From Azolla caroliniana (lineage: Eukaryota; Plantae; Polypodiophyta): a DNA stretch of 64,000 nucleotides. Each line of letters begins with the position of its first letter. Positions within the stretch are counted from its first letter, which is position 1. The stretch lies in contig JBHGNT010000022.1 in NCBI GenBank assembly GCA_043228905.1, forward strand, positions 11,780,001-11,844,000, read 5' to 3'. The notes beneath the pieces are model-generated. The model searched no databases, was not told the DNA's origin, and saw only the letters and a program-made list of their open reading frames with translations. Shown here piece by piece: positions 3,492 to 62,920 of this stretch. The position numbers and the translations under genes are program-made.

Positions 3492-4604
3492 TCAACAAGA
3501 TATCGTATGTTTGCGATGCCCATTGTCGTGATTGAGTCCGTAACGACATGTTTTGAAGGACCACTGAAGCGTGCCGGACATACACGACACCATCGTCGCC
3601 AAGTACGCATTGAGCTTCGGCTCCCTTTGTATCAACTCCTCCTTCCGTTGTATGGCATCAACTACTTGTGCACAATGAGCATCTACACAATCCATCATAT
3701 CCACCACAACTTCCACCGCATTCTGGAAGGACCCGAATGCACCGCTCTCGTACATGACCCACGGAAGGTTGAAATTGTAACCGAGGGACGCCTCCATGTG
3801 GCACGACACGATGTCGTTGCACATACATATGTAGTCTAAAACAAGGTCTCGGAACTCCTCGACGAGCTGGTGGAGATGGATGGGATCCTCATCTAGGCTT
3901 AACATGTAGAGGACTAGCTCGAAACCCACAAGGAAGCCCGAGGAATGCCGGCGAATAGCCATATATTCCTCCATGTTCTTGTTCATATCGCCTCCCTCCT
4001 CGTGCCGCCAAAATGCTCGATTGCTTGTGGGCTGAAGGCAGACGGCATGAAGATGATCTTGCATGACCAATATGAAGCGTGACCGCACTTGTGGGACAAG
4101 CCGAGATTACATCTTGCCCCATAGTTCCCCCAATGCATCTAACATGATTAAGCTCTGGGCATGGCAGTCACTCAAATTGTCGAAAAGTACGACATTGCTA
4201 GGAGATTGTGGGTCGCGGAGTTTAGAAAGAACCAATTGTGCCCAAACATTGGTGGTAGATGGAGGACCATGATCATGAGACCCCATGAAACCATGATCTT
4301 CGGTACCGAGTAACAAGGGGCCATTGTCTTCTATGTCGTCTGACAAGAACAACCAAGCAATGAACTTGATGATGGTTTCAAGATCTCGGAGGTCGGTTGC
4401 TTCCGCAAAAAGGATGAGACAATAGAGGAGACAATAGAGGATGAGACAATAGAGGAGGAGCTGCTCAGAACCGGGGCGAGCCAAGTTAAGGATCCATGAC
4501 TCACACACCATCCTCACACTCTCATATTGTGGGTGCAATTTGGCGGGGAACGAGCATCGGATTGGCGGCAATGTGAAACTGGTACTGCAAGTTGGGATGA
4601 CCAT
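3492..4604 (-). pseudogene. Microbial-type terpene synthase-like (MTPSL) pseudogene, short form without N-terminal extension
   Basis: ORFs 4107..4634 and 3492..4088 share a frame and are split by one stop (TCA>TAA, 4107-4109). Motifs DDIED, RRHSSG, NDIVSCHME, WSFKTCRY. ATG at 4604. Intronless. Confidence 0.9.
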
Positions 4605-4913
4605 TGAGGAGGATACTCTAAAGGTTGATGCCAAAATGTCTATATATTATTGATAGGTATATGTTGAAAATATGGTTGTGTTGGTGCTTTTGAGATGTAC
4701 TATGTCGATTTATGTATAGATCACATTTTGAGAGTCCATTTATAATAATACCAAATGAGGTACCTATGTCTATATTGTCTCATGTGTCTTTCCCTTTTCT
4801 AATGAGTCCAAAGAGTTCCATATGACTTTTGTAGCCTTAAATTCCAATTATGACATGATTAATAGATTTCACAATTCTCGTGGTCCGTAATGCCATGTTT
4901 CCACTTGCTTGTA

Positions 4914-5215
4914 GTATTGCGGGTGCAATTTCATGGGGAATGAGCATCTAATGTGAAACCGGTACCGCAAGTTGGGATCCATGAGTCGCATTAGGTCCTC
5001 ATGGTGCTCTCGGCATTAAGTTGGGCCGCTCAAACGAGTGCTTGATGGGCGGGAGTGTGTCACCAGGAGCTTGTATCCAAGGATCGCGCTCCGTCTGGTG
5101 CAATCCAGAGGAGGCTTGGGCAATTTTAAGTTGAGACCGGTAGCTTGGATCTGCCGCCATGGCTAAGATTCGACTACGGCCAACCTCACCCCAACATTCA
5201 TGAGATTATTACCAT
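4914..5215 (-). pseudogene. Degenerate 5' stub of another MTPSL paralog (N-terminal extension to ...FPMKLHPQ)
   Basis: Reverse complement aligns with gaps to 31895-32315 (cctcaatgg..aataatct; gactcatggatcccaacttgcggtaccggtttcac; aaattgcacccgcaat). No intact ORF. Confidence 0.7.
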
Positions 5216-5333
5216 TGAGGATATGTACTCTCAAATTGATCCCAAATTTACTAATAGATATGGTGAGAGCTTTTGATGGATATGATTGTGTTGGTGTTGG
5301 TGTACGGTTATGGAGGTAGAGCTTCTTGCTTTG

Positions 5334-8300
5334 TGTAAGGAATAGACCCTTCTATTCACCTTCTTCACTCGGCCACAACCGAGTAAGCGCGAATCGATGG
5401 AGCAGAAAATAGGAACCACACGGAGAAACAAAACGCGAGTACACAGGGATTAACGTGGAAAACCCTAGACGGGAAAAACCACGGGAGTACAAGACTCCAA
5501 ACCAACACTATACAGAGAAGTATACAATGGCGAGCTGCAAGGCGACGACCTTGAGCTCGCTGTCCTCGCCACAGGCGGCGGAAATACACAGAGGCGTCTA
5601 CCTCTTCCTCTCTCCGCTCTATCTCTCTCACGGCTGCTCTCTCTTCACTCCTCTAAAGTGGAAAAACAGAAAAAAATGAGAAGCAACAGTAAAACTGTTT
5701 GCCCTAAGTCATATTTATACTTATATGACTTTGGGCTATTTACAACTGTAGCCTCAGGGGCCCATAGCGAACATATTCACGGATATGTCCCTGCATCCGG
5801 ATCGCTCTCCGGGTACATTCGTCATCCGGTACCGAAACCGGGGTCTTCGTCATCCGGATCCGAAACCGAAACCGGGCTTGTCGGCATTCATCTCCGATAT
5901 CCGACCATCCCATCCGAAGGGACCGTAATCCCAACAAACTCCCCCTTCACTTCGGCATGGGATGTCTCTCCAATCCGATCCTCTTCCGGCATGCTTCCAG
6001 CTTGTCGGGTGTGAGCACCTTGGTCAGCATATCCGACCCGTTCTCGTCCGTGTGGATCTTTGTCAGCACGAACTCCTTGTCTTCTATCCTTTCCCGGATC
6101 CAGTGATATCTTCGCTGGATGTGCTTCGTCCGGGAGTGATAGGCCGCGTTCTTCGCAAGGTGGATTGCACTCTGACTGTCGCAGTAGAGTCGGTACTCCT
6201 CCTGTTGGATACCGAGCTCTCTAATGAAGTCCTTCATCCATATTATTTCCTTGCCGGCTTCAACAGCCGCCATGTACTCCGCCTCCGTGGTTGACAACGC
6301 AACCGTCTTCTGCAGCCTCGACTGCCATGAAACAGCTCCCCCTGCATACGTCATCACATACCCTGATGTGGACCGGCTGGTATCTGCATCAGCCGACATA
6401 TCCGAATCGGTAAAGCCGTCGAGTTCGGGCTTTCCGGAGCCGAATCGGAGGCACACGTTTGCCGTGCCCTTCAGGTATCGGAGTATCCACTTGGCCGCGT
6501 TCCAATGCTCTTTGCCGGGATTGCTCATGTACCGGCTCACCACTCCGACTGCATATCTGATGTCCGGTCTCGTACACACCATGGCGTACATCAAGCTCCC
6601 GACGGCTGAGGCATACGGTACTTTCATCATATCCTCCTTTTCAGCCTTTGTCTTGGGACTTTGCTTGCTGGACAGCTTGCAGTTTGTCGGGAGGGTCGAT
6701 CCGACCGGTCTTGCTTCCGACATGTTGAACCGGTGAAGCACCTTCGTCACGTACTTCTCCTGTGACAGCCACAACTGCTTCTTCTTCCGGTCCCGGATGA
6801 TGTGCATCCCTAGTATTTGCCTCGCCGGACCCAGGTCCTTCATTGAGAAGGTTCGGTGAAGAGCCTTCTTCAGCATCCGTATCTTGACCTGATCCCGTCC
6901 GACGATCAACATGTCGTCCACGTACAGGAGGAGTATTAGAGAGTCTCCTTCTTCGAACTTCTTCACAAACACGCAGTGGTCGGACTGCGTTTTGAGGTAC
7001 CCTTCGTCGGTCATGAAGGAGTCGAACTTCCGGTACCATTGCCGGGGAGCCTGCTTCAGTCCGTAAAGGCTCTTCTTCAACCGGCATACCAGGTGCTCCT
7101 TCCCTTTCTTCTCGAATCCTTCCGGTTGCTGCATGTAGATCTCTTCTTCGAGGTCACCGTGAAGGAATGCCGTCTTCACGTCCATCTGTTCTACCTCGAG
7201 GTCCATGCTTGCCGCTATGCTCAGCACCGTTCGGATGGAGGTCATCTTCACTACCGGAGCAAATATCTCGTCGAAGTCGACGCCCTTCTTCTGCTGAAAC
7301 CCCTTCACCACGATCCTGGCTTTGTATCTCGGGGGGTTTCCGGCATCTCCCGGTTTCAGCTTGAACACCCACTTGTTTCGAAGTGCCCGCTTTCCTTTCG
7401 GCAACTCCACAAGTTCATATGTGTGGTTCTCATGCAGGGAATCCATCTCGTCCTGCATGGCACTCAACCACCTGCGGCTCTGGGTGTCATGCTTTGCTTC
7501 TTCAAAGCTCTCCGGCTCCCCCTCGTCGGTTAGCAGCACGTGCTCTGGTTCCGGAAATCTCCGGGGGGCCCTTCTCTCTCTTAGAGGATATCTCCGTTCC
7601 GGAGCTTCGGTAACCGGTTCTTCCGATTCTTCTTCATCCGAATCCATTTCGGGATCGGGGCCGGTTCCGGTATCATTTTCGTCTTCTTCGGCCGGTTCGG
7701 TTTCTTCACCGTCTTCGGCCGGATCCTCGAGTGCTAACCGGTCCCTTGCCGGTCGGGACTGCTCCTCGTAGAGTTTATCCTCACCGGTTGACTTGGAGCT
7801 CTTCATCTTCTTCTCCGACTCCCAGTCGGCGAGTGTCTTGTCCTCCATGAAGATGATGTCTCGACTCCTGAATATCTTCTTGTCAACCGGGTCCCATACT
7901 CGGTAGCCGAACTCGTCGTCGCCGTATCCGAGGAATATGCATGGCCGGGTCTTTGGATCTAGCTTTCCTCTCCGGTCCTTTGCCACATGCACGTATGCGA
8001 GACACCCGAACACCTTCAGATGCCGGTAGGATACTTCCCTACCGGTCCACACTCTCTGCGGCGTGTCTCCGTCCAAAGGTACTGAGGGTGATCTGTTTAT
8101 CACGTATGTCGCCGTCGACATCGCCTCAGCCCAAAAACCCTTGGGTAATTCCGCATGCGCCAGCATACTCCGGACCCTCTCCATTATGGTCCGGTTCATC
8201 CTCTCAGCCAGCCCGTTCAGTTCCGGCGTCTTCGGCACAGTAAACTCGAGTCGGATTCCCTTCGAGCGACAGTACTCCTGGAACTGCCCCCGGTATTCCC

Positions 8301-10653
8301 CTCCATTATCCGCTCGTATCGCTTTCAGCTTCTTGCCGGATTCCCTTTCCACTCTCGCGTGGAGTTCTTTGAAGACGCACAACACTTGGTCCTTTGTCTT
8401 CATCGGTGCCGTCCACAGCTTCCGGCTGTGGTCATCAATGAATGTCACGAAGTACTGGGCTCCGCCATGTGACTTCGTTTCTACTTGACACACATCAGTG
8501 TGTACCAACTCCAATGGTACACTACGTCTCTTCGGTGGCCTTGAGTGGAAGGAGGCTCGGTTCTGCTTACCGGCCAGGCAATCGGTGCACTTCTCCAGGT
8601 GCACGTGCTTCACTGGAATAAGGTTGTCTTCTGCAAGCCTCTTCATCCCCTTCTCACTCATGTGGCACAGTCTTTTGTGCCACAGCTCACCGGCAGTGTC
8701 GGCTGCCACATTCAGCTCTTCCGGACATAACCAGGCATTCATCAAGTACAGTGTGTTGACCTTCCGGGCCCGAGCCACTATCAAGCTCCCCTTGCTGAAC
8801 TTCATGACACCGTTCCGGATGCTACCCGTGTAGCCTTCATCATCTAGCCTCCCGGCCGAAATCAGGTTCAGTCGGACCTCCGGAACGTGTCGGACATTCT
8901 TCAGCAGCATTTTGCATCCGGTCGGGGTTGTCAACCACACGTCTCCTATGCCGGCAATCCGGCACGTACCTTCGTTTCCCATCCGAACACAGCCATGCTC
9001 GCCGGCTGTGTAGGATGAGAAGTATCTTCTCTCCGGGGTCAGGTGGAACGATGCTCCGGAATCGACCACCCAGGTCGTCTCATCGCCGGCAATGTTTAGT
9101 TCACCTTCTTCGGTGATGAGCATGATCTCCTCTTCACTTGCCGCGAGTGCCGTCGTTCCTTTCCGGTCCTGTCCTCGCCGATCCGAACCATTTCGGTCCG
9201 TGGCTCCCCGGTATGCACCGTTTCTCTCCGGTGACTTCTTCGAATCGGTGTTGTCGGTTCCATTGTCCTTTCGGTAATGCCGACAATTCTTTCGGAAGTG
9301 CCCGGGCTTCCCACAGTGGAAGCATGTGGGCCTTCCTCTTGACTGCGACCGGGTCCCCGACTTCTCCCGTCTTTGCGGACTCCGGTTCCATTGTCTTCCC
9401 CGATCCGATTCGGTAAACAACATCTTCGGGTCGGAGGCCGGTTCCTTATCTCTCCGACGCGCTTCTTCATTCAAAATACTTGTCTTTACCGTTTGTAAGG
9501 ACAAGTTATCTTCGGCGCAGGAGGTGCTGAGAGTTACCACCAAGTTCTCCCAGCTTTCCGGCAATGTACACATCAGGATGATGGCTTGCATTGCATCCTC
9601 CAACGGGAACTTGATCGCCGCAAGCTGATTCACGAGTCCCATGAACGTGCTTACGTGTTCCACCATACTCTCGCCATCCCGGTACTTGAGATTCACTATC
9701 TTCCTCATCAGGGAGGTTCGGTTCAACGCATTCTTCCTCTCATAGAGGCCCGACAGCTTCCGCCACATCTCATATGCGTTGGTGTCGTTCGCCACATGTT
9801 GTAGAACGCTCACGTCGACGTATTGCCGAATGGTTGCAACGGCTTTCCGGTTCAGAAGCCTCCATTCCGACTCAAGTACCCCCTTCGGTATTTCCGACCT
9901 GTCAATCGGTTCGTACAGGTCCCGAACAATCAGAAGATCCTCCATCTTGATCTTCCAGTCGGCGTAATTCTGTGCATTCAGCACCATCATCCCCGGCTGC
10001 CCGCTGCCGCCGCCTTCCATTTTCTGCAGCAGTTCGCTCTGATACCAGTTTGTAAGGAATAGACCCTTCTATTCACCTTCTTCACTCGGCCACAACCGAG
10101 TAAGCGCGAATCGATGGAGCAGAAAATAGGAACCACACGGAGAAACAAAACGCGAGTACACAGGGATTAACGTGGAAAACCCTAGACGGGAAAAACCACG
10201 GGAGTACAAGACTCCAAACCAACACTATACAGAGAAGTATACAATGGCGAGCTGCAAGGCGACGACCTTGAGCTCGCTGTCCTCGCCACAGGCGGCGGAA
10301 ATACACAGAGGCGTCTACCTCTTCCTCTCTCCGCTCTATCTCTCTCACGGCTGCTCTCTCTTCACTCCTCTAAAGTGGAAAAACAGAAAAAAATGAGAAG
10401 CAACAGTAAAATTGTTTGCCCTAAGTCATATTTATACTTATATGACTTTGGGCTATTTACAACTGTAGCCTCAGGGGCCCATAGCGAACATATTCACGGA
10501 TATGTCCTTGCATCCGGATCGCTCTCCGGGTACATTCGTCATCCGGTACCGAAACCGGGGTCTTCGTCATCCGGATCCGAAACCGAAACCGGGCTTGTCG
10601 GCATTCATCTCCGATATCCGACCATCCCATCCGAAGGGACCGTAATCCCAACA
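5334..10653 (-). mobile_element. Intact young Ty1/copia LTR retrotransposon (Tnt1/Tork-like), unit A only
   Basis: 603-bp LTRs 5334-5936 and 10051-10653 (TG..CA, 2 visible mismatches). 5-bp TSD CTTTG, PBS TGGTATCAGAGC (tRNA-iMet, 10036-10047), PPT next to 5937. Empty site at 42634-42638. Confidence 0.98.
5947..10020 (-). CDS. Copia gag-pol polyprotein, 1357 aa, uninterrupted
   Basis: CCHC knuckle CFHCGKPGHFRKNC, protease VVDSGAS, GAG-pre-integrase WHKRLCH, integrase core, RT LYVDDML, RNase H DSDMS..TKHI, in copia order. Confidence 0.97.
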   Translation of the reverse strand: MEGGGSGQPGMMVLNAQNYADWKIKMEDLLIVRDLYEPIDRSEIPKGVLESEWRLLNRKAVATIRQYVDVSVLQHVANDTNAYEMWRKLSGLYERKNALNRTSLMRKIVNLKYRDGESMVEHVSTFMGLVNQLAAIKFPLEDAMQAIILMCTLPESWENLVVTLSTSCAEDNLSLQTVKTSILNEEARRRDKEPASDPKMLFTESDRGRQWNRSPQRREKSGTRSQSRGRPTCFHCGKPGHFRKNCRHYRKDNGTDNTDSKKSPERNGAYRGATDRNGSDRRGQDRKGTTALAASEEEIMLITEEGELNIAGDETTWVVDSGASFHLTPERRYFSSYTAGEHGCVRMGNEGTCRIAGIGDVWLTTPTGCKMLLKNVRHVPEVRLNLISAGRLDDEGYTGSIRNGVMKFSKGSLIVARARKVNTLYLMNAWLCPEELNVAADTAGELWHKRLCHMSEKGMKRLAEDNLIPVKHVHLEKCTDCLAGKQNRASFHSRPPKRRSVPLELVHTDVCQVETKSHGGAQYFVTFIDDHSRKLWTAPMKTKDQVLCVFKELHARVERESGKKLKAIRADNGGEYRGQFQEYCRSKGIRLEFTVPKTPELNGLAERMNRTIMERVRSMLAHAELPKGFWAEAMSTATYVINRSPSVPLDGDTPQRVWTGREVSYRHLKVFGCLAYVHVAKDRRGKLDPKTRPCIFLGYGDDEFGYRVWDPVDKKIFRSRDIIFMEDKTLADWESEKKMKSSKSTGEDKLYEEQSRPARDRLALEDPAEDGEETEPAEEDENDTGTGPDPEMDSDEEESEEPVTEAPERRYPLRERRAPRRFPEPEHVLLTDEGEPESFEEAKHDTQSRRWLSAMQDEMDSLHENHTYELVELPKGKRALRNKWVFKLKPGDAGNPPRYKARIVVKGFQQKKGVDFDEIFAPVVKMTSIRTVLSIAASMDLEVEQMDVKTAFLHGDLEEEIYMQQPEGFEKKGKEHLVCRLKKSLYGLKQAPRQWYRKFDSFMTDEGYLKTQSDHCVFVKKFEEGDSLILLLYVDDMLIVGRDQVKIRMLKKALHRTFSMKDLGPARQILGMHIIRDRKKKQLWLSQEKYVTKVLHRFNMSEARPVGSTLPTNCKLSSKQSPKTKAEKEDMMKVPYASAVGSLMYAMVCTRPDIRYAVGVVSRYMSNPGKEHWNAAKWILRYLKGTANVCLRFGSGKPELDGFTDSDMSADADTSRSTSGYVMTYAGGAVSWQSRLQKTVALSTTEAEYMAAVEAGKEIIWMKDFIRELGIQQEEYRLYCDSQSAIHLAKNAAYHSRTKHIQRRYHWIRERIEDKEFVLTKIHTDENGSDMLTKVLTPDKLEACRKRIGLERHPMPK

Positions 10654-12911
10654 CTTTGATGGATATGGTTGTTTAGGGATTATATGGAATCAAAGGACTC
10701 CATACTTTTTTTTTTGTATAGTCTTTAATTCCAATCTGTAAGAAATCAAGCAATAACACAAGAGATAGGAAGAAGATAACAAGGAGAGAGAGAGAGAGAG
10801 ATCAAGATCCAACAGTTGTATTTCTCACATCATATGAATAGTGGTTACAATGTGTATATATGAGAGAAAGGGTGGTTACAAAACGTTTTTATAAATGAGG
10901 GGTATTTTGGGAAATATTATTTATTACTTTATTTATCATAATATGTTTTATTTTTATTCCTAATATTATACTTTATTTTATATTCTAACACCCCCCCATA
11001 AAATAAAGTGTTTATTTTTCTTTATTGATATTGCTAATACTAAGACCAATTTTATTACAACAATTCCAATGTTTTTGTTGTGGTACTGGCTTCATCAAAA
11101 AATCCGCCCACATTGTTGTAGTAGATGTATAATGTAAAGACATTTCTTTTGCTTCTACCAACTCTCGAATAAAATGATGTCGCGCTCTTATATGTTTATT
11201 TTAATCCGTGATCTTTGGGTTGATAGCTAGCTTAATACATGACTGATTGTCGCAAAATACTTTGACTTCATTAAGCTTTATGATGTCGAGCTCTTCAATG
11301 ATCGTCTTTATCCACAATCCTTCTTTTGCCGTTAATGCCGCCGCAACATATTCCACTTCGGTGCTAGAAAGAGCCACGGATACTTGACGTTTGGTTCTCC
11401 ATGCAATTGCCCCATCGGCAAATGTGAAAACCATACCAGATGTTGAGCGGGAGGTATCAAGATCCCCCCCCCCCCAATCCGAATCCGTCCAACCGACTAA
11501 TGGTGTTTGGAGCCAACCATTAATTTGGGACGAATTCCTAGATTGGAAAGACTTGTATGTGAGACCGATGTCTTTAGTGTATTGTAGATAGCGAAGAACT
11601 CGCTTTAAAACATTCCAATGAACTACTCTGGGATTCTGCATAAATCTAGAAAGAAAACCAGCTGAGTAAGACAAATCTGGACGTGTACAACTCACAAGAT
11701 ACCTTATACTTCCAAGGATTTGTCGATAAGGAAGTGTTTTCATGAGTTGCTCTTCTTCCACGGTCTTTGGACTATCATTGGATGATAGTTTGCACGGTAC
11801 GATCATTGGTGTTGCAGTAGGTTTGCAATCAGACATCTCGAACTTGTGAAGAATTTCTTCGACCAACTTTCGTTGCGACATAGTAAGTGTGCCTTCCGTC
11901 CTATTCCTTGTTACCTTGATACCAAGGCAATACTCTAGTGGTCCTAGGTCTTTGACGGGAAACTTCTCCTTGAGTTGATTTATAGCCTTTCGCATTGAAG
12001 TAGTAGAGTTTGAGGCAATTGGCAAATCATCAACATACACACCAATGATTACATAGTCACTTCCTTCTTTACGAATGTAAAGATTTGGCTCGGCTTGAAG
12101 ACGCCGAAAATTAATAGACATAAGAAATGTATGGAGCTTGTGGTGCCACATTCGTGGAGATTGTTTCAAACCATACAATGACTTATGAAGCTTACACACA
12201 TACTTTGGGAATTTTGAATCTTCAAAAAATGGCGGTTGTTGCATGAATATTTCTTCATTTAAGTCGTGACCATGTAAAAATGCGGTTTCGATATCTAAGT
12301 GGTGAAGTTCGAGATTAAAACCGGCCGAAAAAGCAAGCATGACTCGTAATGGAACCATTTTTAGTGTCGGCGCAAATGTTTCTTTAAAATCCACACCAGG
12401 AATTTGTGAAAAACCACGAGCGACGACACGTCGAGCTTTATATCTCGTCACTACACCATGTGCATCCTTCTTCTTCGTAAGTACCCACTTACTAGATATG
12501 ACATTGCGATTCTTTGGTTGTGGCACTAAAGTCCATGTTCCATTGCGCATGAGTGCCTCCATCTCCGTTTGCATCGCCGACTTCCACATTTCACTCTCGG
12601 GACCATTAAGGGCTGCTTTTGGAGTGAGATTTATGTCCTCAAGTGGAATATCACCTTCGTTATCTTCAATCTCGTCAATAGTCTCCGGTCCGAAGTCGGC
12701 CATGAGTGCTTCGAATGGATGTGTGGCTTCCATGATTTCGTAAATATTACGAAATTTTTGCTTGATTGGTTGCGGCTGATCATCAAAATTCTCATTTGTT
12801 GGGTAAGTGCCGGGTAGAGAAGGAAATATATTGACATTAGGTGATGCTTCTGGTGTGAAACCTATATGTATGTGGATGACTTAAGTTCACATGAGATTTA
12901 TTAGTTACACT

Positions 12912-13487
12912 CATAGTTCTAGCCATACGTCCCATTCGTGTCATACTCAAACGCCAATATTCGTATCATACTCATACGTGAAAAGGCTCCAAGTATGATT
13001 GAAATCCATACGCGGTACATAGATATATTATATATACATATGGTGTATATGGTGTACATAGTGTGTGTGTGTGTGTGTGAGGGGGAGAGAGAGAGAGAGA
13101 GAGCGTGTGTGGTCTAGAGAGAGAAGCCCTGTTTTGCATGTGTGAGGAGACAGTGATTGAGTGTATATCTAGACTCTAGAGAGAGAGAGAGAGAGGAGCT
13201 ATGGGTTTTGTCTGTGTGAGGGAGTATGTAATATGTATATTAGATATCTAGATTTTGTAGAGAGAGAAAATCTGTCAGTTCTCGTGTGAGAGAGAGAGAG
13301 TGTGTGTGTATGTGTGTCAGATGTCACTTCTATTCACAAAATATTATGAATATCAAAAATTAAAAAAACCAAAATAAAGTAAAAAAAAAAAAAAAAAGCC
13401 AAACGAATATCGCGTATCATACGCGTACGTTTGCAAACGTTCGCGTACGTCCAGTAAATTGGACGTACGCGAATATTAGGAACTATG
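12912..13487. mobile_element. hAT-type MITE inserted in copia-2, unit A only
   Basis: TIR CATAGTTC..GAACTATG and perfect 8-bp TSD GTTACACT. Empty site at ~44879-44886. Internal GA/GT microsatellites. Confidence 0.92.
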
Positions 13488-24170: not shown

Positions 24171-24207
<37 letters not shown>

Positions 24208-51590: not shown

Positions 51591-52069
51591 CCGTCAAACC
51601 ATGTGATCTAGTATTCATCGAGTATATAATATAGAATCTTCCCACTTTATATAATTGGAAACTTATCCCGCACCTATATATTAATTAATGCCATAGTTTT
51701 AGAGAGTAACATGCCTAATGTCACACATAGACAAATATGACATAAAACGAAAATCCGAAATTGAAGCACGATGACTCCTTTTCCACATGTGGGTCCGTAA
51801 ATATGAGTCGCTCACATCATGAAACATTTGGTATCATTATAAAATGACTATCAAAGTGGGATCTATAAATCAATATACATCTCAAAACCATCAACACAAC
51901 CATCTCAAAGCATGACGCCTCCTTTTCCACATGTGGGTCTACTCCTGTTTCACATGTGGGTCGGCAAATACGAGTTGCTCACATCATGAAACATTTGGTC
52001 TCATTATAAAAGGACTCTCAAAGTGTGATCTATAAATCAATATACATCTCAAAACCACCAAAATAACAA

Positions 52070-53310
52070 TGTAGATCAGAAATGAGATGGACTATGAAAT
52101 CGGAAATCATTAACGCTCTACTGATTAGGGAATCTGCTACTCAAAGGATGACAATGGAGAAATGGATAGGCCATGAGGAGGAGGGTTCTCTGATCCCGAG
52201 AGGTAGGGGATCACTAGACAGACTCGAAGGCCCTGAATTATGAGACACTGAGACACCAACACAGAATAACGGCATTCGAGTACTCGCGTACACTGGTCAT
52301 AAATGGGTTGTAGATCCTGATCCAACCAAAGTACAACCCGATTGGCATATATGTACTCATGAAAACACATGGCTACGTAAGGTCAGTTGGGACCCTTTGT
52401 AATAGACATGGCGTGATCCCTACGCGGAGCAAGGAAGCAAACCCATCCCTTTCTTCCAATTCACAACTAGATTGGGTCGCCACATTCTAGCTACTCAAGT
52501 AGCCCGAGAACCGGCTGTTGCGAAGGTCTGGCACACATTTCAAGTTCCCTTCGCAATAATCACCAAGTTTTGGCAGAAAATCTGGAAGCAACAACACGTG
52601 AGGCGAATTACCACTTTCCAATGGTTATTAATACATAAGTCCCTACCGGTGGGAGCATGGCAACGTGGGAACCTTAGCTCTCCTAATTGTGTAGAGTGCC
52701 CACATGCAGTAGAATCCATACGACACGCTCTATGGGACTGCCCAACGTCCCATCGAATATGGCGGGGGGTTGGCCGCTTGTTGCAATTATGCCAGGTGCA
52801 AGGTTCAATCAAGTGGGGAAATATATGTTGGCTATCATGGCAAGCTGCAATTGGCCGATACGAGCATCAGGAGGAGGGGATGACTTTGGTGATAAAAGCA
52901 CAAGAGGTCCTTTTCTCCTCTAGCGGCAATGTCCACTCTATTCCTCTTAATGACAAATCTCAAGAGGCGTTGGAATTGGTCAGCCCAATAACCCTTTGGA
53001 TTCTATGGAAATAACAATGTAGGCGAGTCTTCTCCAACCAAACCGCCCATCCAACAAGGTTACTGCAAGACATATGGAGTGAAATTGTAGCCACTCTAAA
53101 GAGTCAATATGATGGCCTTAAGGGCGGCTCCGAGGGAGTTGAAAGACAACGTATAGCCTTCATCCAACAATGGTCATCCTCTCCCTTTCTTGAGTCAATG
53201 GGCATCCACATAAGATGGAACTATCGCGTCCCTTTAGGGATTTGTACATAATCATCTCATTTGTAAAATTTTATAACTAATGGAAGGAGTTTTTTTTGGG
53301 AAAAAAAAAA
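52070..53310 (+). mobile_element. 5'-truncated LINE, unit B copy
   Basis: TSD CACCAAAATAACAA, poly(A), ORF 52472..53014. Confidence 0.88.
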
Positions 53311-53403
53311 CACCAAAATAACAAACATATAATCAAACCTCTCACCCTACTATACATATCAATAATAATATAGGCATTTTGGCATCAACTTAGGGTATCT
53401 TCA

Positions 53404-53723
53404 ATGGTGATCCTTAGGAGTCTTCCCTCGGTTACAATTTCAACCTTTCGTACCTCGTGTATGAGAATGGTGCATTCGGGTCCTTCTAGGACGTTGTGGA
53501 AGTTGCGGTGGATATGATCAATTGTGTCAATGCTCGTTCTGCAAATTCTAAAGTAGTTGATGCCATCCAACACAATGAGGAGTTGATACGAAGGGAGCCG
53601 AAGCTCAATGCTTACTTGGCTACGATCGTGTCGTGTATGTCTGCCAACATTCGTTGGTCCTTCGAAACATGTCATTACGGACTTAATCACGACAATGGTC
53701 ACAAGCATATAATATCTTGTTGA
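53404..53723 (+). pseudogene. Internally deleted MTPSL remnant, unit B copy
   Basis: Copy of 23619-23935. Confidence 0.85.
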
Positions 53724-53958
53724 TATAAGAATACATGATCTTGATTTTTTGCATGTATGTTTTTGACCTGTCGAGAACGTAGCCTCCCCTACATTGTTTA
53801 TAAATTATTATTCCGTTGGTTTTGAACCATCCTATGTGACAATATGTCATTTGTATTAATCATATTATTCTTTATTTTTGAAGCTCTTTAGCATTGCAAA
53901 CAAGGTTCATTGTCAATTAATATTGTAATTGACCTAGGGTTATGAGAAGAAATTTGTG

Positions 53959-53993
<35 letters not shown>

Positions 53994-54203
53994 ACATAGT
54001 GAGATTTGAGGTTTTTGGAGTAAGTGCATGAAGAGGCTAGAATCAATGCTACGAGGGTGCTCAAAGCATGAACAAAAGGGGGCGAAAGGGGGTTGAGTTA
54101 GAATTCCTTACCATTGAAATTTTCCTTGCAATTAGGTAATGGGAAATATGTTATAGTATATTGGGCTAAATTGAGTGTGGAGGTTTTTCCACTCAAGTGG
54201 AAG

Positions 54204-54434
54204 TATAGTACGTAAAATTCGTGTTCGTCTAGTATAACATTCGTTTTCCTACATTGGAAAACGAATGTGAATGTTATTTAAACATTCTTGTGTTTTTTTT
54301 TTGCTTTTTCCCATTTTTTTAATGTTTTTTATTTATTTTTAGGCTTATCTACCTCATAATAAATAGTTAATCCAAAAGTATGGTATTTATCATTCTTTGA
54401 GGGTGTTTATGGTACGTATGGTTCACATACTATG
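54204..54434. mobile_element. hAT-type MITE, unit B copy
   Basis: Copy of 24418-24646. Confidence 0.82.
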
Positions 54435-55872
54435 AGTGGAACCCACAACTAAAGGGCAATAAGCAAAAGGTAGGGCAATTTTGTGTAATTTCAATGCAAC
54501 TACTTTTTTATTCTTTATATGCTTATGCCGAGGATGTCAAAGTCTAACTAATTAATTAAGCAAACAATAAAAGAATTATAGACCAAAGAAAGGAAAGTGT
54601 GATTTTCTCATTGTGACGTTCAAGCTTGGATATGATTTTCTCAATGAGAAATTAGAAGCCAAATGTTGTTTTTTCTTGCTTTTTTCTGAATCTGAAAGCA
54701 AGGCAAGCTTGGATGCGAGATTAGGAAAGAAAATTTTCCAAAGTACTCATCCAAAGCTTCAAAATAGAGCCATAATAAACTGTACAGCCTCCCTCCACAT
54801 AACAAATGCTATGAGGTCCGCTTATAAAGCATGAGACTTAGCTGATTAGGAGAGAAAATTTTCCCAAGCACTCATCCAAAGCTTCAAAATAGAGCCATAA
54901 TATGTTTTTAGATAGAAAAAGGCTTTCACATTAATGAAAAGTTTCTTACACATGCTTTGAAGACCAGAAAGCTAAAAAACACCATATTCAATAAGTTTCT
55001 GTGATTCCAATTTGATATAATGTTCAAGTATGAATATATATAGAAGTTGAAATTTGAAATGTTGACTGGCGTACATATCTTAGATAAAATTCAAATAAAT
55101 AAACCCATCACTCATATACATAAATAGTTGCATGAAAAATTTGGAACATCCTCTTTTCATGTACATGGTCCCTACAAAAAGCACCAAGAGCTGACCCTGC
55201 ACAAGGTTAATAGAGAACATTAGACTAAGTGAACAAGATGCTTAAGAGAAACCTCACCCTAAAAATGGAACAAAAACAACATGTCTTGGGATACAAACAT
55301 ATAAAAGTGGCACAAGATAAACATGGCGATAAATAAATAAAAGACGGCTCCGATCGTCTACGATTTCCGAGACGAGTTCAGGGCCGTCCAAGGCCTAGAT
55401 TCACGGGCTTCACCTATTTAATGTTTCTCCCCCTAATAGTGACGAGAGGGTCAGGGCCTAAATTTGACGGGTTAATATTAAAGTTTTTTGACGGGCATTT
55501 TTTAAAGATGTATGTCATATGACATAAGATTGCAAAAACTAACATGTCCTTTGACATACAAATTAAAAAAATGAAAAGCATAGTAATATGACCTAGTACT
55601 CACCTTTTCTACACTAACCTAAATTTTTTTAACAAAGCATAGTAACAAGTATGAAAAAAAACAAGTTAGTAAAATAAAATAAAAATTAACTTAAAAAAAG
55701 TAGGTTAATAAAAAAGTTAGTTGCATCTTAAAACTTAACATTAAAAACTAACCTAGAGCCTACACTCTTAGAGTATTTATAAAGGTTATTGTTTAAAATT
55801 TAAATCAAATTTTAACTAATATTATTAGTAAAAAATAAATATTTGAGAATATATATTATAATTACATGATAT

Positions 55873-58800
55873 TGTAAAATGCCTCAAACTCTCTCCCCTT
55901 TTTCTATTACATTTGAATGCTTTTATACACCTTGGTAATACATTCGAAGATACATTCGGTTATCTTGGCACACTTACCTCTAACTAACCTCTTACTAACT
56001 TTAGTGTAACTAACTAACCCAAGGTCTAACTCCCCTAACCCTGGTTATAGCTACTTGGGTTAGGGGAAGGGTTTTGGCCTGTGGTTTTACCACGCGATCC
56101 CACAACTCTCCCCTTCAAAAAATCTGAGTATGTCGACTGTGTCTGATGGTGCCTCTTCGCCTCCGTCATTGTGGGAGTGACATCCGCCGCGTTGCTATGG
56201 CAGAGGGCATCTCCATTGCTCGTGTGCGGTGGTGGCTCTGCTTCGTCCTGCTGGCTAGCTGCGACTGAAGGGTTTTCTGATTCATCCTCGCAGGGGACGT
56301 CATGGTGAGTTTCTTCCTCTTGTGCTTCTTGAGTTGTGGATTGTTGATTATATGGCTTCATCCGTATCACGTGCGCATAAGCAATCCGCCCATTAGCATC
56401 GCGGCGGAGGGAATACGTGTTGGCTCTCATTGAACGGATGACCGTAAAAGGGCCGATCCATCGATGCATCATTGATTCACTGAGTCCTTGTCGGCGGATC
56501 GGGAAATAGACTAGGACCTTTGTTCCGGCTGTGTACTCGACCGCCCGACGACCCTTATCATAGCACCGCTTTTGGCGCGACTGAGCCAATTGTAGATTCT
56601 TGTGTATGCTCAACCGTAAGATAGGTTGAACCTGTTGCAAGTGCAGCCACCAATCCATCGCATCGGTTCGATTATTTTTTTTGGGTAGATCCACCTTGAT
56701 GTCGGGGGGTAAACGGGGATCTCTTCCATATAGTGCTCTGAAAGGGCTGATTCGAGTCGAGGCCTGCACCAAAGTGTTATACGCATGCGTGATGAAGAGT
56801 AAGATCAAATCCCACGTTGTGTGTAGTGGGTCGATGAATGCGGTAAGTTGTTGTTTAATCATCTTGTTCATCCGTTCATTCAATCCGTTCGTCTGGGGAT
56901 GGTATGGGGAGGTGAATATCTGTTGAATCCCTAACTATGTGGCTAATGCTTGCAGTACCTCTCCGCTAAATTGCGGTCCATGATCTGAGAGGATGCGAGT
57001 TGGGCAGCCATGTGGGAAAATGATCCGCTCCATCAGCTTTGTTGCTATGGTGACGGCTCGTGCATCCAGAATTGCGGCGGTTTCGGTCCATCATGTCAAG
57101 TATTCTAAGATGACTAAGATATACTTGTTTCCTGCCTGGGAATCGGGAAAAAAGCCGATGATATCCCATCCTATTAATTCAAAGGGTTCAGAAACAGTAA
57201 TAGGTTGGAGTAGGCCGTCATTGGAATGGGGAGGATTAATTTGTTGACATGAGTGACATTGTTTGATGTAGGCCGCAATTGTTGTACGCATTTGCGGCCA
57301 ATAATATCGGAGACGGATCTTGTCCAATACCTTGTGGAATCCGAGGTGGCCGGACATCGGGTGATCGTGAAAAAATTGCATATATAAATTCCGCAAGCTT
57401 TGTGGCTCTTTCCATGTTTGTATAAAGTATAAGACATTGTTTTGCAATTGGAAATGGGTGTGTACCTTTTTGCTTGTTGTCGATTGGATGTCATGGGTGA
57501 TTTGTCGTATTTGCTCATCGGCTTGTTGTAGGGCTGCTATCTGGGCCATCGTTGTGGGTAATTGGACTAGTGTAGGATTGAATTGAACACATTGTGTTTC
57601 TACTCTTGACAAACCATCGACGATCACATTTTGGACTCCTTTTTTGTAAGTTAAGGTGTACCGATATTCCTGTAAAGCCATTGCCCATCTTAATAGGCGA
57701 CCTGGCGGGTGTGGCTTGTTAATCAGATGGATTAGGGGTTGGTGATCCGTTTCGACGTTGACGTGGGTGCCATGTAAATAGGGATGGAACTTTGTGAAAG
57801 CCCATACGATTGCGAACTTGGAGCCTTTTCGCAATAAGTGTCGTAGGGTTGTTGTCATGGTGGCCATATTGGGAATGAATCGGAGCGAAAAAGTCGCCAT
57901 GCCTAAGAAACTATGCAGGGACTTGACTGTGGTTGGTCGGGGAAAATTGGTCACGGCCTCGGTCTTCTTTGGGTCCATCTGTAGGCCTTCGGCAGAAATT
58001 ATGTAGCCCAAAAACTTGAGTTGGGTGCTACCCCATCTGCATTTTTTCCATTGTAATTTCAAATTGTGTTGTTGTATTCGTTGTAGAACTGATTGTAATA
58101 CCTTAACATGTTGTGGCCATGTGGAAGTATGAATTAGAATGTCATCCAGGTATACGAGCACTGTACCGTTAGCGATAAGGTCAACGAATATTGAATTTGC
58201 CATCCGTTGAAATGTGTTGCCTGCATCGGACAAGCCAAATGGCATCCTATTGAACTGGAATAGCCCTCTGCGTGTTCTGAAAGCTGTCTTATGTGCATCT
58301 CTTGGGTCCATTGGAATCTGCCAATATCCAGCCGCAAGATCGATAGAGGTGAAGTACTTTGAGCATCCCAGCTGGTCCAAGAGATCATCTATTCGCGGCA
58401 GAGGGTAAAGGTCATGGATGGTAACTTGATTGAGCTTGCGAAAGTCAACACAAAATCGGTATGTGCCATCATCCTTTTTGACCATGTGTGGCTCCGATAC
58501 CCAATCACTATGTGGGGTGAGATGATCCCCTTTTTAAGCATCTCATTAACTGCTCGGTCAATGCGTGCATGATCTAAAGGAGAATGTCGTCTTGCTGCTG
58601 TCCGGACAGGTGTTGCGCTTCCTGTGTTGATGACATGTTGGACTGGGAATGAGACTGTAGTGGGCTTGTCAGATGAGTTGATTAGTTCGGGGTATTGAGC
58701 TAAAACCCTGTGGACATCACTTAGGCGAACCTCCTTGCTTAATGTTACCTGTGCATTGCTGATTTGTTGGTTGCATTTGCTTGTGAACAGGGGAACTGGC

Positions 58801-60153
58801 CTTGCTTGTGGTAATGTGAGGTGACGCGTATGGAAATCGAGTTGGGCCCTGCTCTTGATGAACCAATCACATCCGAGTGTGAGTGGGAACAATTAATGTG
58901 GAAGGACGTAAAAGGTGTGTGTGATCGTGGTGGAGCCTAGCTTGAGTGTGTAGACGACTGTGGTGTTGGACTTATATAGGCGTTGGTGATCGCCAAATAA
59001 CACCTTGATGGGGGAGGCTTTGGAGGTTGAAAGATTGAGGCGATCAACTAGATCTTGACTGATGGAAGATATGCTACTACCGGAATCAAAGAGAACTTCT
59101 TGTGGGCTATGGAGAATTGTTGCCATGGTCGTGCACACGGGAGAACTTGAGGATGTGGATGCTTGTATGTGCGGGGGTTGTGCTCCCTTCAACACCCCGC
59201 GACTTAGTTTTCTGACAGGTCGGTCCGATAACTATTGTCAACCAACTATACTTGCACATTTTGCTTCTGTGTTTGGTTGTTCCATTTCCGACAGTGTTTC
59301 TTCACGTGCCCATAGTTGTTGCAAAAAAAACACTTAGGTCTTCCTTGTGTATCGCGTGTTGGCAGGTTCCTTCTTGCTTGTAGTTGAGCGTTCTGGATAT
59401 CGATTTCCATTAGCGTGGCGTTGCTATTGTATTGTTTCTCGGAATTGACATTGGATGACCAACTCATTTGGAGTTCTGTTTGTGTTGCTGCTTCAATGCG
59501 TTGTGCAATGAGGATGGCTTCTTGAAATGTTTTGGGGCCTTGATCGCGCACTCGACGATATATTTCTGGGCATAGCCGTGGCCATAAGAAGAATAGCTTC
59601 ATCGATTCTGGGATTGTTGGATTTGCGCGAGTAATTAATAGTTGTAATCGGATTGCAAATTGTGTCACTGGCTCATGTTGTTGTTGTTTGATTGTCTCTA
59701 GTTGCTGCAAAGCCGTCTGAGTTGAGTCATGGTGAGCAAAATTCCCGATCATGAGGGATTTAAGTATCGACCAATCGTTCTTGGACTCCTCTGTTTGCTG
59801 TATGAACCATGTGGTCGTGATGCCCTCCAATAAAGTTCGCATCTCTAGTGCTTTCCGTGCTTCGGGCCACTGATGATAGCTCGCCACCATTTCAAAATGA
59901 TCGAGCCAAGAAAGGATGTCCTCAGACGGCAGACCTGAGAAGGATTTAGGTCGTACTCGTGGGTCTGGCCGATTAGCGTGCCTATCTGTCTGCGAAGAGA
60001 AAAAAGATAGCATGGCCTGATTAGTCAAATTTGATTGTATTGCGATGTTAGATACCGCTTGTATTAGTTGATCCAGCTGGAAAGCTTGACGGTTTTCTTG
60101 GTGTTGTTGCAGAAATTCTTGATTCATGTCGGTGCATTCTGTTACTGATACAT
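55873..60153 (-). mobile_element. 5'-truncated Ty3/gypsy, unit B copy
   Basis: Putative LTR 55873-56104. gag is continuous (within 59246..60193). pol is broken by stops and frameshifts plus an in-frame ~240-bp deletion in the RT connection/RNase H region (KGSKF|AIVWAF). Confidence 0.9.
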
Positions 60154-61465
60154 GTTTAGGGTTTATATGATTATGGATATGTATAGATCTCAAGACTAGA
60201 GCCTTTAATTATTAGACTAGAGCCGTTACTGATTACTCTCTTTCCAATTATTTAAAAGACTCCAGAGTCCATACCCTTTTTTTGTATAGCCTTTAATTCC
60301 AATCAATGTGTGACTTTCTTGTATAACACGTGCCAATGAATGTATGTACCATCAAACCATGTCATCTAGTATTCATCGAGTATATAATATAGAATCTTCC
60401 CACTTTATATAATTGGAATCTCATTCCACACCTATATATTAATTAATGCCATAGTTGTATATTGTAATGTTTGATGTCATATTTCATGTGGGTGTGAGTG
60501 CATTGGTTGTCGTATGCAAGCAACTCGTATTTAGCATACACCCACATGTGAAAAACGAGACATAATGCCTATTGAAACTCATATATGATTAATGATCATA
60601 GATGTGATGCCATATTCGTGGGCCATGGCTATGGAGTCCTCTTTTCATTATAGATATCCCATGTGAAAAGACCAATATCTCATGTTGTGCCACCAAATTG
60701 ATGGAAAAGCTACTAATGTCAAATAAATAAATAGATAAAAGTATGCTCAACGTAAACCATTCACACCCATCCGCGATGTGAATTAATATGTAACTTGAAA
60801 ATAAATCTGAGAGAGGTGGTGCACATTTTGAACCTTCACAATAATGGAGAAACATGAAATCGCATGATCAAGTATAAAAAATTACTATACAATATTGAAA
60901 CATCACATTCCATATTGAAACAAAAATACTTGATGGAACATTACAAGGAAAAATTATACATGTGTTGTATATAAAAGTGGCAAGATTATATAGATATATA
61001 TCTATACATACTAGCATACATGTGCTTGTTTAGGGATTCGTCTTTTAATTATTCATGAAATACTTTGTAACATGGTTTCATATGATACTTTCTAATGGAG
61101 AATCGTGTTTCAAAAATCATTAAGCACTTTAAAGTTGTTAACTTCTCAAATTTGTATGTTTACGATTGCGGGAAATGGACCAAATACATAAGACATGAGG
61201 TATGCAAAAACACAACGTGCAAGTGGAAATATGTACATATTATGGAGGCATTTCCAAGCACGAGACTTGAAAGCTACAAAGACGTGTGGAACTTTTTGGA
61301 CATGAGTACCTTATTTGGTATGATTATAAAAGGACTCTTGAAGTGTGATCTATGCATAACTCAATATATATCTCAAAACCACCAACACAACCATATCATC
61401 AAACCTCTCACCATATACATATCAATAATATAGCCATTTGACATCAACCTTACGGTAGATACTCA

Positions 61466-62920
61466 ATGGTGATCCTCAATGGGAATAATAATCTTGCGAA
61501 TCTCGAGTCCCTGAGGCTGGGCTCCGTGATGTCACTACAAGGGTTAAATATAGGCTTTGTGAAACTGGCCTCCAAGTGGGCCCAAGATTCCCATTTCACA
61601 TTATCATCGCGCTCGATGCATACCTCCTCTCGAATCAACTCTCGGCCATGCCCACACCGAGCTACAAGCCTAAATTTGTTGCCATTGCGGTGCTCAATGG
61701 GGGCAGCCTCTGAATTGCACGCAGACCATGCCCATGTGAGTGTGGAGCACGATACTTGGACACAAGTTTCCAGTTTCACATCGCCGTGTATCAAGTTCTT
61801 GCAAACCGAATGTGACTCACGGATCCCAACTTGTGGTTCCGGTTTCATCTTGCCACCAATCCGATGCTCGTTCCCCACCAAATTGCACCCGCAATGCGAG
61901 ACTATAAGGATGGTGTGCGAGCCATGGATCCTTAACTTGGCTCGCCCCGGTTCTGAGCAGCTCATCCTCGATTGTCTCATCCCCCGCTATGTGTGCCGCC
62001 TTTTCCCGGAAGCAACCGACCTCCGAGATCTTGAAACCATCACCAATTTCATTGCTTGGTTGTTCTTGTCGGACGACATAGAAGACACTGGCCCTTTGTT
62101 ACTCGGTACCGAAGGTCATGGTCTCATGGGGTCTCATGATCATGGTCCTCCATCTACCACCAATGTTTGGGCACAATCAGTTCTTTCTAAACTCCGCTAC
62201 CCACAATCTCCTATCAATGTCGTCCTTTTCGACAATTCGAGTGACTGCCGTGCCCAGAGCTTAATCATGTTAGATGCATTGGGGGAACTATGGGGGAAGA
62301 TGTCATCTCGGCTCGTCCCACAAGCGCGGTCGCGCTTCATATCGGTCATGCAAGATCATCTTCATGCCGTCTGCCTTCAGCCCACAAGCAAACGAGCATT
62401 TTGGCAGCACGAGGAGGGAGGCGATATGAGCAAGAACGTAGAGGAATATAGGGCTATTCGCCGGCATTCCTCGGGCTTCCTTGTCGGTTTCGAGCTAGTC
62501 CTCTACGTGTTAGGCCTAGATGAGGATCCCATCCATCTCCACCCACTCGTAGAGGAGTTCCGGGACCTCGTCTTAGACTACATATGGATGTGCAACGACA
62601 TCGTGTCGTGCCACATGGAGGCTTCCCTCGGTTACAATTTCAACCTTCCGTGGGTCGTGTATGAGAGTGGTGCATTCGGGTCCTTCCAGGACTCGGTGGA
62701 AGTTGTGGTGGGTATGATGAATAGTGTGGATGCTCGGTGTGCACAAGTAGTTGATGCCATCCAACGGAATGAGGAGTTGATACGAAAGGAGCCGAAGCTC
62801 AATGCTTACTTGGCGACCATGGTGTCATGGATGTCCGGCACGCTTTGTTGGTCCTTTGAAACCTATCGTTATGGCCTCAAACACGACAATGAGCATCACA
62901 AGCATGCAATATCTTGTTGA
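61466..62920 (+). CDS. Intact microbial-type class I terpene synthase (MTPSL), 484 aa, intronless, with transit-peptide-like N-terminus
   Basis: DDxxD (DDIED), pyrophosphate-sensor Arg region (YRAIRRHSSG), NSE/DTE (NDIVSCHME), WxxxxxRY (WSFETYRY). Alpha-domain only. Ser/Arg-rich first ~78 aa ending LRCS. Confidence 0.92.
   Translation: MVILNGNNNLANLESLRLGSVMSLQGLNIGFVKLASKWAQDSHFTLSSRSMHTSSRINSRPCPHRATSLNLLPLRCSMGAASELHADHAHVSVEHDTWTQVSSFTSPCIKFLQTECDSRIPTCGSGFILPPIRCSFPTKLHPQCETIRMVCEPWILNLARPGSEQLILDCLIPRYVCRLFPEATDLRDLETITNFIAWLFLSDDIEDTGPLLLGTEGHGLMGSHDHGPPSTTNVWAQSVLSKLRYPQSPINVVLFDNSSDCRAQSLIMLDALGELWGKMSSRLVPQARSRFISVMQDHLHAVCLQPTSKRAFWQHEEGGDMSKNVEEYRAIRRHSSGFLVGFELVLYVLGLDEDPIHLHPLVEEFRDLVLDYIWMCNDIVSCHMEASLGYNFNLPWVVYESGAFGSFQDSVEVVVGMMNSVDARCAQVVDAIQRNEELIRKEPKLNAYLATMVSWMSGTLCWSFETYRYGLKHDNEHHKHAISC

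Follow-up and report, generated by a model that had tools for sequence, protein, structure and literature searches.

Duplication and decay in a microbial-type terpene synthase cluster of a plant, probably a fern, with one intact predicted class I enzyme

How did eight terpene synthase loci of microbial type come to lie among retrotransposons in one 64,000-nucleotide stretch of DNA (the window), and does any of them still encode an enzyme? We put at about 80% the probability that these loci form a cluster of microbial-type terpene synthases (MTPSLs) in a plant, probably a fern, and that the cluster is turning over by duplication and decay, with one copy, C2, as a predicted class I synthase. The original prediction had advanced the locus as a candidate for an undescribed system. 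That claim falls: fern MTPSLs, copy-number-variable clusters (PMC12448838) and leader-bearing moss MTPSLs (PMC13098426) are published, and the cluster adds a further, unexceptional case to a gene family on record from non-seed plants, ferns included. What the window offers is turnover seen at base level in a terpene synthase family of horizontal origin, inside a transposon-rich, fern-type genome, with cassette copying, block duplication, homogenisation, CpG nonsense, microhomology deletion and truncation on view.

The C2 protein has a single Pfam match, PF19086 (E=3.8e-17). In the HMM search proposed along with the original prediction, PF01397 (the N-terminal beta domain) and PF03936 (the metal-binding domain) of typical plant terpene synthases gave no match at E<=0.01, and no prenyltransferase domain appeared. 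Residues 1 to ~125 form a disordered, Ser/Thr-rich leader, and residues ~126–470 a class I alpha-domain that carries DDIED at 203–207, NDIVSCHME (NDxxSxxxE) at 377–385 and RY at 468–469. Across a 14-sequence alignment D203, D204 and D207 are invariant, and 90% or more of the sequences keep N377, D378, S381, E385, R468 and Y469. The AF2 model places residues ~126–470 in one helical bundle with a confident all-helical core, while residues 1–125 have pLDDT <50. The Foldseek top 50 are all single-domain microbial class I synthases (TM 0.70–0.82 by target), and every one of the best 60 matches from phmmer and profile searches of the PDB is a class I terpene synthase domain from a bacterium or fungus; no typical plant terpene synthase structure occurs in either set (best 60; Foldseek top 50). 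In the ESM Atlas C2 lies closest to PF19086 clusters, mostly from Ascomycota. Pfam, PDB, alignment and Foldseek results together bear out the expected alpha-domain-only, microbial-type protein with DDxxD, NSE and RY motifs. C2 is an MTPSL in having the alpha domain only, microbial affinity, the metal motifs and few or no introns, and lacks what defines the typical plant terpene synthases of subfamilies a–h. By this evidence C2 is a predicted single-alpha-domain, Mg2+-dependent class I terpene synthase, which would ionise a prenyl diphosphate via its DDxxD and NSE metal sites.

Every NCBIfam bacterial equivalog falls well short of its cut-off (best, isoafricanol synthase, 56.8 bits versus 500), so these models give no basis for naming a product; bacterial and fungal matches score alike, which leaves the donor lineage unreadable from these matches. 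A word-based protein search reached 13 close family members with the single protein and 17 with the 14-sequence profile, all of them without a name, and no lycophyte, fungal or bacterial sequences. Intact paralogues besides C2 are P0002, P0003, P0005 and P0008-10. Since the solved structures and Atlas clusters closest to C2 come from fungi and bacteria, one might suspect that these are not resident plant genes but contaminants from microbes, or arrivals by a very recent transfer. This is hardly credible, and the findings contradict it: plant-type copia, gypsy and LINE elements alternate with the eight copies in one gap-free contig, the paralogues form a family of their own down to 39% identity, the best microbial structure is merely ~22% identical, and the locus recurs in independent DNA runs from several related organisms. 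A plant-type telomere repeat lies in the same contig. The stretch is present in DNA runs of related organisms from several studies and in leaf and plant metagenomes, the highest share of its words in any run being 0.70.

Searching the window by tblastn with the intact C2 ORF recovered six loci, at 3495-4598(-), 23633-23932(+), 31886-33337(+), 40800-41903(-), 53418-53720(+) and 61466-62917(+). Residues 1–100 of paralogue P0005 recovered two more 5′ fragments, at 4914-5201(-) and 42219-42506(-), with E about 1e-8. These are the eight loci, four per unit and in both orientations, that had been predicted, and C2 is indeed the sole uninterrupted ORF among them by the ORF list and tblastn (Table 1).

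Table 1. Positions of the duplicated units, terpene synthase loci and associated features in the window
Feature	Position	Strand	Basis and remarks
Unit 1 of the segmental duplication	1..37305	+	Self-blastn; left end cut by the window
A1, pseudogene	3492..4604	-	tblastn, alignment; C-terminal piece matches PF19086, E=3.3e-14
D1, 5′ fragment: leader and first ~40 catalytic-domain residues, with stops and frameshifts	4826..5296	-	tblastn with P0005 residues 1-100 (5201-4914, E=1e-8)
Copia element present only in unit 1	5334..10653	-	LTRs 5334-5936 and 10051-10653, 99.67% alike
B1, 3′ fragment; coding piece 23633-23932 with internal stops	23521..24054	+	tblastn, blastn
C1, full-length pseudogene	31886..33340	+	Base-by-base comparison; 98.8% nt identity to C2
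Ninth-cassette scar, 316 nt	34493..34808	+	Second copy of the cassette 3′ flank, no gene ahead
Unit 2 of the segmental duplication	37306..64000	+	Self-blastn; runs beyond the window end
A2, duplicate of A1 sharing all three defects	40797..41909	-	Lies in the 99.8% block
D2, copy of D1	42131..42601	-	blastn; tblastn with P0005 residues 1-100
B2, copy of B1	53306..53842	+	tblastn, blastn
Upstream sequence common to C, A and B cassettes	61299..61465	+	blastn, 77-79% identity
C2, sole intact MTPSL ORF, 484 aa	61466..62920	+	ORF list, PF19086, alignment, AF2, Foldseek
3′ flank common to C, A and B cassettes	62921..63672	+	blastn; probable-RNA contigs reach 63131 and 63632

The defects could be read base by base. 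C1 differs from C2 at 18 of 1,455 nt, 13 of these differences being nonsynonymous, and is interrupted by the premature stop R310*, a CGA>TGA change at 32813-32815 that is a CpG transition; private changes were polarised using L001, a contig from a related genome, and the A loci. A1 and A2 have lost 116 N-terminal codons, with ATG plus 10 nt fused in frame to codon ~120 at a GATCC microhomology. Both also have the conserved LIPRYVCRLFP, of which PRYVCRLFP is invariant in the family, swapped for the short repeat LYCLILYCLLYCLIL, and carry a TAA at codon 166 (A1, 4107-4109; A2, 41412-41414). B1 consists of a promoter remnant and ATGGTGATCCT, an out-of-frame join to codon ~385 and then the 3′ flank; at the junction in B1 and B2, ATG plus 11 nt is what precedes that codon. 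D1 has P0005 as its nearest paralogue. Nonsense, deletion and truncation are thus all seen, the first two as the original prediction held, but the A loci were not lost by single nonsense changes alone, since the 116 codons and PRYVCRLFP are also gone. The scar in unit 1 retains a 25-nt piece absent from the flanks of both C1 and C2, and marks a ninth, deleted cassette.

Each gene travels in a cassette of ~2.4 kb, made up of about 170 nt upstream, an intronless ORF and about 700 nt downstream. The promoter and 3′ flanks claimed to be common to the copies were recovered by blastn (~61299-61475 and 62921-~63672), and amplification at two scales holds, with cassettes 72–90% alike and units of 28–37 kb 97.5–99.8% alike. 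The cassette was copied several times at the DNA level, in both orientations, and the majority of copies then broke; a direct-orientation duplication of a 28–37 kb block carrying four cassettes probably came later, and part of that block was probably homogenised or re-duplicated very recently. Sharp cassette borders common to the copies, the position of B directly after a zf-RVT (LINE-type) ORF, and the orientation of A and D, which run opposite to B and C, would also suit spread by a gene-capturing transposon (Pack-type, Helitron or LINE transduction) rather than unequal recombination. We consider such capture quite improbable: a search for terminal inverted or long direct repeats flanking the cassette found none, no poly(A) tail was seen, and the upstream region is kept in the copies, which are therefore not processed retrocopies.

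Self-blastn resolves the window into two direct-repeat units (1-37305, then 37306 to at least 64000), each with four loci of single-domain class I terpene synthase (PF19086), two per strand, amid copia, gypsy and LINE debris that includes zf-RVT elements. Positions 63746-64000 equal 35342-35596 at 100% by blastn, so unit 2 extends past the window end; it lacks the unit-1 sequence 34160-35341, the junction lying at 63745|63746. The unit-to-unit offset drops from 37305 to 29547 because of extra insertions in unit 1. One of the unit-1 elements, the copia in Table 1, retains an intact polyprotein ORF of 1,357 aa and a CTTTG target-site duplication, and its empty site is found in unit 2 at 42634-42638. 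Divergence between the units falls into two strata, 0.1–0.5% and 1–2%: positions 1-5333 match 37306-42638 at 99.8%, the remainder at 97.5–98%, and an abrupt step from ~0.25% to ~1.4% occurs within a copia common to both units.

Such colinear units, with 0.1–2% substitutions and transposon and indel polymorphisms that could be allelic, raise the question of whether two haplotypes of one locus were assembled in series, leaving four loci with C polymorphic between a working C2 and a null C1 (R310*). In DNA run X1, from a related accession, the 63745|63746 junction occurs solely in its unit-1 form, which speaks for haplotypes. Both units, however, lie within one contig with no N gap (0 in the window), the divergence step inside the shared copia is typical of exchange between tandem paralogues, and L001 shows an independent, smaller-scale tandem duplication at the same locus. 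We therefore judge haplotypes unlikely and retain duplication of a block in a plant cluster. In L001 two intact copies stand 4.4 kb apart at this place, and these tandem copies, together with the scar of the ninth, make birth-and-death, as originally proposed, a good fit.

Is C2 still held by selection? C2 has accumulated seven nonsynonymous and three synonymous private changes, five times the number in the L001 copy (2 changes over the same time), and omega between the two is 0.88, on 12 changes, counts too few to tell 0.4 from 1. The pattern is compatible with neutral drift, and C2 may be under relaxed constraint. Because it has changed faster than its counterpart in the related genome, its function in the source genome is plausible, not assured. 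With this tempo in view, and with the sister copy C1 killed by a single CpG transition and other intact paralogues at hand, the whole cluster might be dead in the source genome, C2 being a pseudogene still without a stop and the function being carried by paralogues elsewhere. We regard this as possible though on the unlikely side: C2 keeps all catalytic motifs and the near-invariant positions of the family, and none of its seven replacements alters a motif position. Turnover with one surviving candidate remains our preferred reading, and C2, with its probable plastid leader, is the single intact candidate enzyme, clonable and assayable.

Related organisms offer a view of expression. Three probable RNA runs (X11, X13 and X15; the RNA label is guessed) yielded one contig each, spanning 61573-63632, 61573-63131 and 61375-62794. 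These contigs cover the gene only, depth dropping to zero on either side, and follow the genome colinearly without joints; in a DNA run used for comparison every bin was covered. Their letters are those of the variant in the related genome and not of C2 itself, and they indicate an intronless, transcribed gene in the relatives. As far as the contigs show, the predicted lack of introns is upheld: with an uninterrupted 1,455-nt ORF and joint-free colinear contigs, the gene has few or no introns. In one related organism the common upstream sequence lies inside the transcript, given the contig start at 61375. Position 61573 was rejected as a transcription start, being more likely a graph break at paralogue-common sequence, as the third contig starts upstream of the ATG.

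The long N-terminal leader is open in paralogues 72–74% identical, with indels in frame, and evolves at an omega of 0.53, against 0.38 in the catalytic part; the first 80 residues of C2 contain 20% S+T and 2.5% D+E. On this combination of an open frame, omega and composition, we take the leader to be coding. A leader of ~120 residues that is disordered, Ser/Thr-rich and acid-poor probably has a plastid-directing role, in which case the substrate would be drawn from the plastid's C5, C10 or C20 pool. By analogy with the moss isoprene synthases, one might go further and propose that the C-type genes define a fern-specific MTPSL subclade that gained both the ~120-residue plastid leader and the insertion behind DDxxD, acts in the plastid on a C5, C10 or C20 substrate, and differs sharply in dosage between very close genotypes, with two intact expressed copies in one and, in the source genome, one possibly drifting copy and seven wrecks. 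We hold this composite proposal to be doubtful; if true, it would amount to a natural chemotype polymorphism.

For the MTPSL family of non-seed plants the source is Jia et al. 2016 (quoted in PMC9169658 and PMC6779861). MTPSLs have 0–7 introns, versus 12–14 in typical plant terpene synthases. Fern members (DbTPSL, CpTPSL, MplTPSL, AcTPSL) were cloned and assayed by Wang et al. 2020 (as cited in PMC7826640). Like these fern and other non-seed-plant enzymes, the proteins here are single-alpha-domain, microbial-type class I synthases that carry DDxxD and NSE/DTE motifs and belong to a multigene family with at most a few introns; compared by description, the clade here differs in its ~120-aa leader and in some 50 residues inserted after DDxxD and modelled at low confidence. 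The Marchantia polymorpha MTPSL cluster shows presence/absence and copy-number variation (PMC12448838; PMC12890914), and is likewise a physical paralogue cluster whose copy number varies between close genotypes (here one intact copy versus two in L001). It belongs to another plant lineage; here the majority of copies are pseudogenes lodged among retrotransposons. The moss MTPSL-type isoprene synthases PcISPS and LjISPS (PMC13098426) share a long N-terminal plastid-type leader (113 aa in moss, ~120 aa here) ahead of a single alpha-domain but, compared by description, have DDxxxD in place of DDxxD. Fold (TM 0.70–0.82 by target) and metal motifs are shared with fungal Copu9 (7OFL), AriE (9LPB), a Streptomyces diterpene synthase (9M25) and pentalenene synthase (1PS1), whereas identity to them is 15–22% and the plant proteins add the leader and the insert.

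C2, the sole open microbial-type terpene synthase-like (MTPSL) frame of the window, encodes 484 aa that match Pfam PF19086 (Terpene_syn_C_2; E=3.8e-17). Among the matches listed in PDB sequence and profile searches, all were bacterial or fungal class I terpene synthase domains, including AriE (9LPB, 8e-24), Copu9 (7OFL, 3e-19) and a Streptomyces diterpene synthase (9M25), and none was a typical plant TPS. An AlphaFold2 model (14 family members) revealed a confident, all-helical core at residues ~126–470, with low confidence at 1–125, 206–229 and 306–317. Its best 50 Foldseek matches in the PDB were microbial single-domain synthases throughout (TM 0.70–0.82 by target, identity 15–22%). The originally named refuting outcomes, affinity to prenyltransferases or to typical plant TPS, did not arise in any of these match sets. 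Scores for structures of bacterial and fungal origin are similar, and the donor lineage therefore cannot be read from the present data. In the family alignment DDIED (203–207) is invariant, and NDxxSxxxE (377–385), the RR pair (332–333) and RY (468–469) are kept in at least 90% of sequences.

With C2 as tblastn query, five further loci surfaced in the window, and the N-terminus of a paralogue recovered two more 5′ fragments, bearing out the count of eight MTPSL loci: each unit has four of them, two on either strand. The original prediction attributed loss of the other copies to single nonsense changes, internal deletion or decay. Nonsense (C1), deletion and decay all occur, but A1 and A2 were not lost to nonsense alone. 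In their frame codon 166 is TAA, where C2 reads TCA, and besides this stop they carry a leader deletion joined at GATCC microhomology and a short repeat in place of the family-invariant LIPRYVCRLFP. The deletions in A and B are independent, and each starts 10–11 nt past the ATG (sites compared at 4595–4604 and 23619–23632). The octamer CTCAATGG occurs twice in C2, 13 nt apart and flanking the start codon (61463–61490), and singly in D, which has no in-frame ATG (5150–5330); its duplication may have given rise to the start codon and to a hotspot for deletions.

Features of the window by unit (suffix 1, unit 1; suffix 2, unit 2)
Feature	Unit 1	Unit 2	Strand	Remark
Repeat block	1-5333	37306-42638		99.8% identity
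Repeat block	10654-12911	42634-44886		99.4%
Remaining repeat	to 34159	44879-63745		97.5-98%
Terminal block	35342-35596	final 255 nt of window		100%
A1/A2	ATG at 4604	ATG at 41909	minus	start codon + 10 nt fused in frame to codon ~120
B1/B2				ATG + 11 nt fused out of frame to codon ~385; more stops within
C1/C2	31886-33340	61466-62920		18/1455 nt differ, including CGA>TGA at codon 310 of C1
D1/D2				leader + 40 residues; stops, frameshifts
Gene-less 3′ flank copy	34493-34808			
Copia	5334-10653	empty site		TG..CA ends; TSD CTTTG
Complete copia, polyprotein ORF	5947-10020		minus	1357 aa
Gypsy pol ORF	26230-29649	56035-58892		unit 1: unbroken, 1139 aa; unit 2: split into three ORFs
zf-RVT ORF	22698-23465	52472-53014		LINE-type reverse transcriptase tail
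Telomere repeats		46029-46063		CCCTAAA, ~4.5 copies
Length difference at telomere-repeat site	15760-16339	46031-46067		unit 1 longer by ~580 nt
ORF, 190-207 aa	26-598	37280-37903		

Self-comparison illustrated one large direct duplication. Because the last 255 nt of the window match unit 1, unit 2 extends beyond the window end and lacks unit-1 34160–35341; position 1 is a mere window edge, so the true duplication ends lie outside view. Substitution divergence between units rises from 0.1–0.5% over 1–12.9 kb to 1–2% further on, with the step inside a shared copia, a pattern that tandem paralogues typically show after exchange. That the assembler wrote two haplotypes of one locus in series is unlikely: both units lie within a single gap-free contig, the copia with TSD CTTTG faces an empty site in unit 2, and the divergence step falls inside a shared element. 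These points favour a real paralogous duplication. In X1, a DNA run of a related accession, the 63745|63746 junction appears in the unit-1 form only.

About 170 nt upstream and 700 nt downstream are common to the C, A and B cassettes (upstream stretch, intronless ORF and 3′ flank), confirming the predicted flank sharing and indicating that the cassettes were copied as DNA rather than as retrocopies. A search for terminal repeats around the cassette found none. Cassette identities (C–A 90%, C–B 82–84%, A–B 78%, D ~77%) place their divergence as much older than that of the units. P0001, at 98% identity the nearest protein in the database, is encoded on L001, a 17.6-kb ENA contig (assembly ERZ1034429) that is ~2% diverged from the window and has the same gypsy gag upstream. 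At 8202–16191, L001 carries the C cassette as a tandem pair (4407 nt, 99.97% alike) with two intact 484-aa ORFs. The second, gene-less flank copy in unit 1 keeps a 25-nt piece found in L001 and absent from the C1 and C2 flanks. By sequence comparison, this copy is a scar left by a further, deleted cassette, a ninth, and C1 and C2 are sister copies that arose after the 25-nt loss.

Polarised with L001 and the A loci, private changes numbered 7 nonsynonymous and 3 synonymous in C2, 6 (stop included) and 2 in C1, and 2 in total in the L001 copy. The flanks diverged to a similar extent in each of the three lineages, hence C1 and C2 evolved faster than the L001 gene. The excess of replacements, this faster rate and an omega of 0.88 between C2 and L001, on 12 changes, make it possible, if doubtful, that C2 is an unbroken pseudogene; against this, no C2 replacement touches a motif. 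Such a pseudogene and a working but redundant gene fit the data alike.

We compared Logan contigs of sequencing runs, none of which contained more than 0.70 of the window's words, so the window's own sample is not among them. Three probable RNA runs, so labelled by prediction and from three different organisms, yielded a single contig apiece, confined to the gene (61573–63632; 61573–63131, ending in sequencing adaptor; 61375–62794), with zero depth on 60400–61374 and past 63632 and no joints. All bins were covered in X1. A transcribed, intronless gene would give this pattern. The contigs carry L001-type letters and a C at 62393, and expression is therefore shown for the intact orthologue in relatives, not for C2. 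X1 word depth of 430–515 on the gene contigs versus 188–228 on the flanks fits a collapsed L001 tandem pair.

The model leaves residues 1–~125 disordered; of the first 80, 20% are Ser+Thr and 2.5% acidic. Paralogues at 72–74% identity keep this leader open with in-frame indels, and Nei–Gojobori omega between C2 and P0002 (sister sample ERZ1034401) is 0.53 in the leader and 0.38 in the catalytic part; the leader is therefore coding. The A deletion removed exactly this part. Its composition, together with the 113-aa leader of moss MTPSL isoprene synthases (PMC13098426), suggests a putative plastid transit peptide.

The locus had been proposed as the best candidate for an undescribed system, a reading that published work speaks against. 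Lycophytes, bryophytes and ferns are all established hosts of MTPSLs, whose origin is thought to be microbial (PMC9169658, PMC6779861); four characterised fern enzymes are credited to Wang et al. 2020 as cited in PMC7826640; Selaginella genes have 0 or 1 intron (PMC7826640); a Marchantia four-gene cluster differs in copy number among accessions (PMC12448838); and mosses have leader-bearing MTPSLs (PMC13098426). The locus is thus a well-resolved instance of known MTPSL biology in another genome.

The window as a whole is 64 kb of AT-rich plant DNA with 0 N, dominated by retroelements in the ORF list and Pfam: two copias, one complete and one degraded, a duplicated gypsy element, and LINE-type elements with zf-RVT ORFs, which lie immediately 5′ of the B fragments. 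With an intact polyprotein ORF and an LTR identity of 99.67%, the unit-1 copia is young, and its activity was probably recent. The gypsy pol is split in unit 2 and intact in unit 1, so transposons too decayed after the unit duplication. Plant-type telomere repeats sit within the degraded copia of unit 2. No Pfam family significantly matches the 190–207-aa ORF inside the 99.8% block; the best hit, at E=0.01, falls short of the cut-off.
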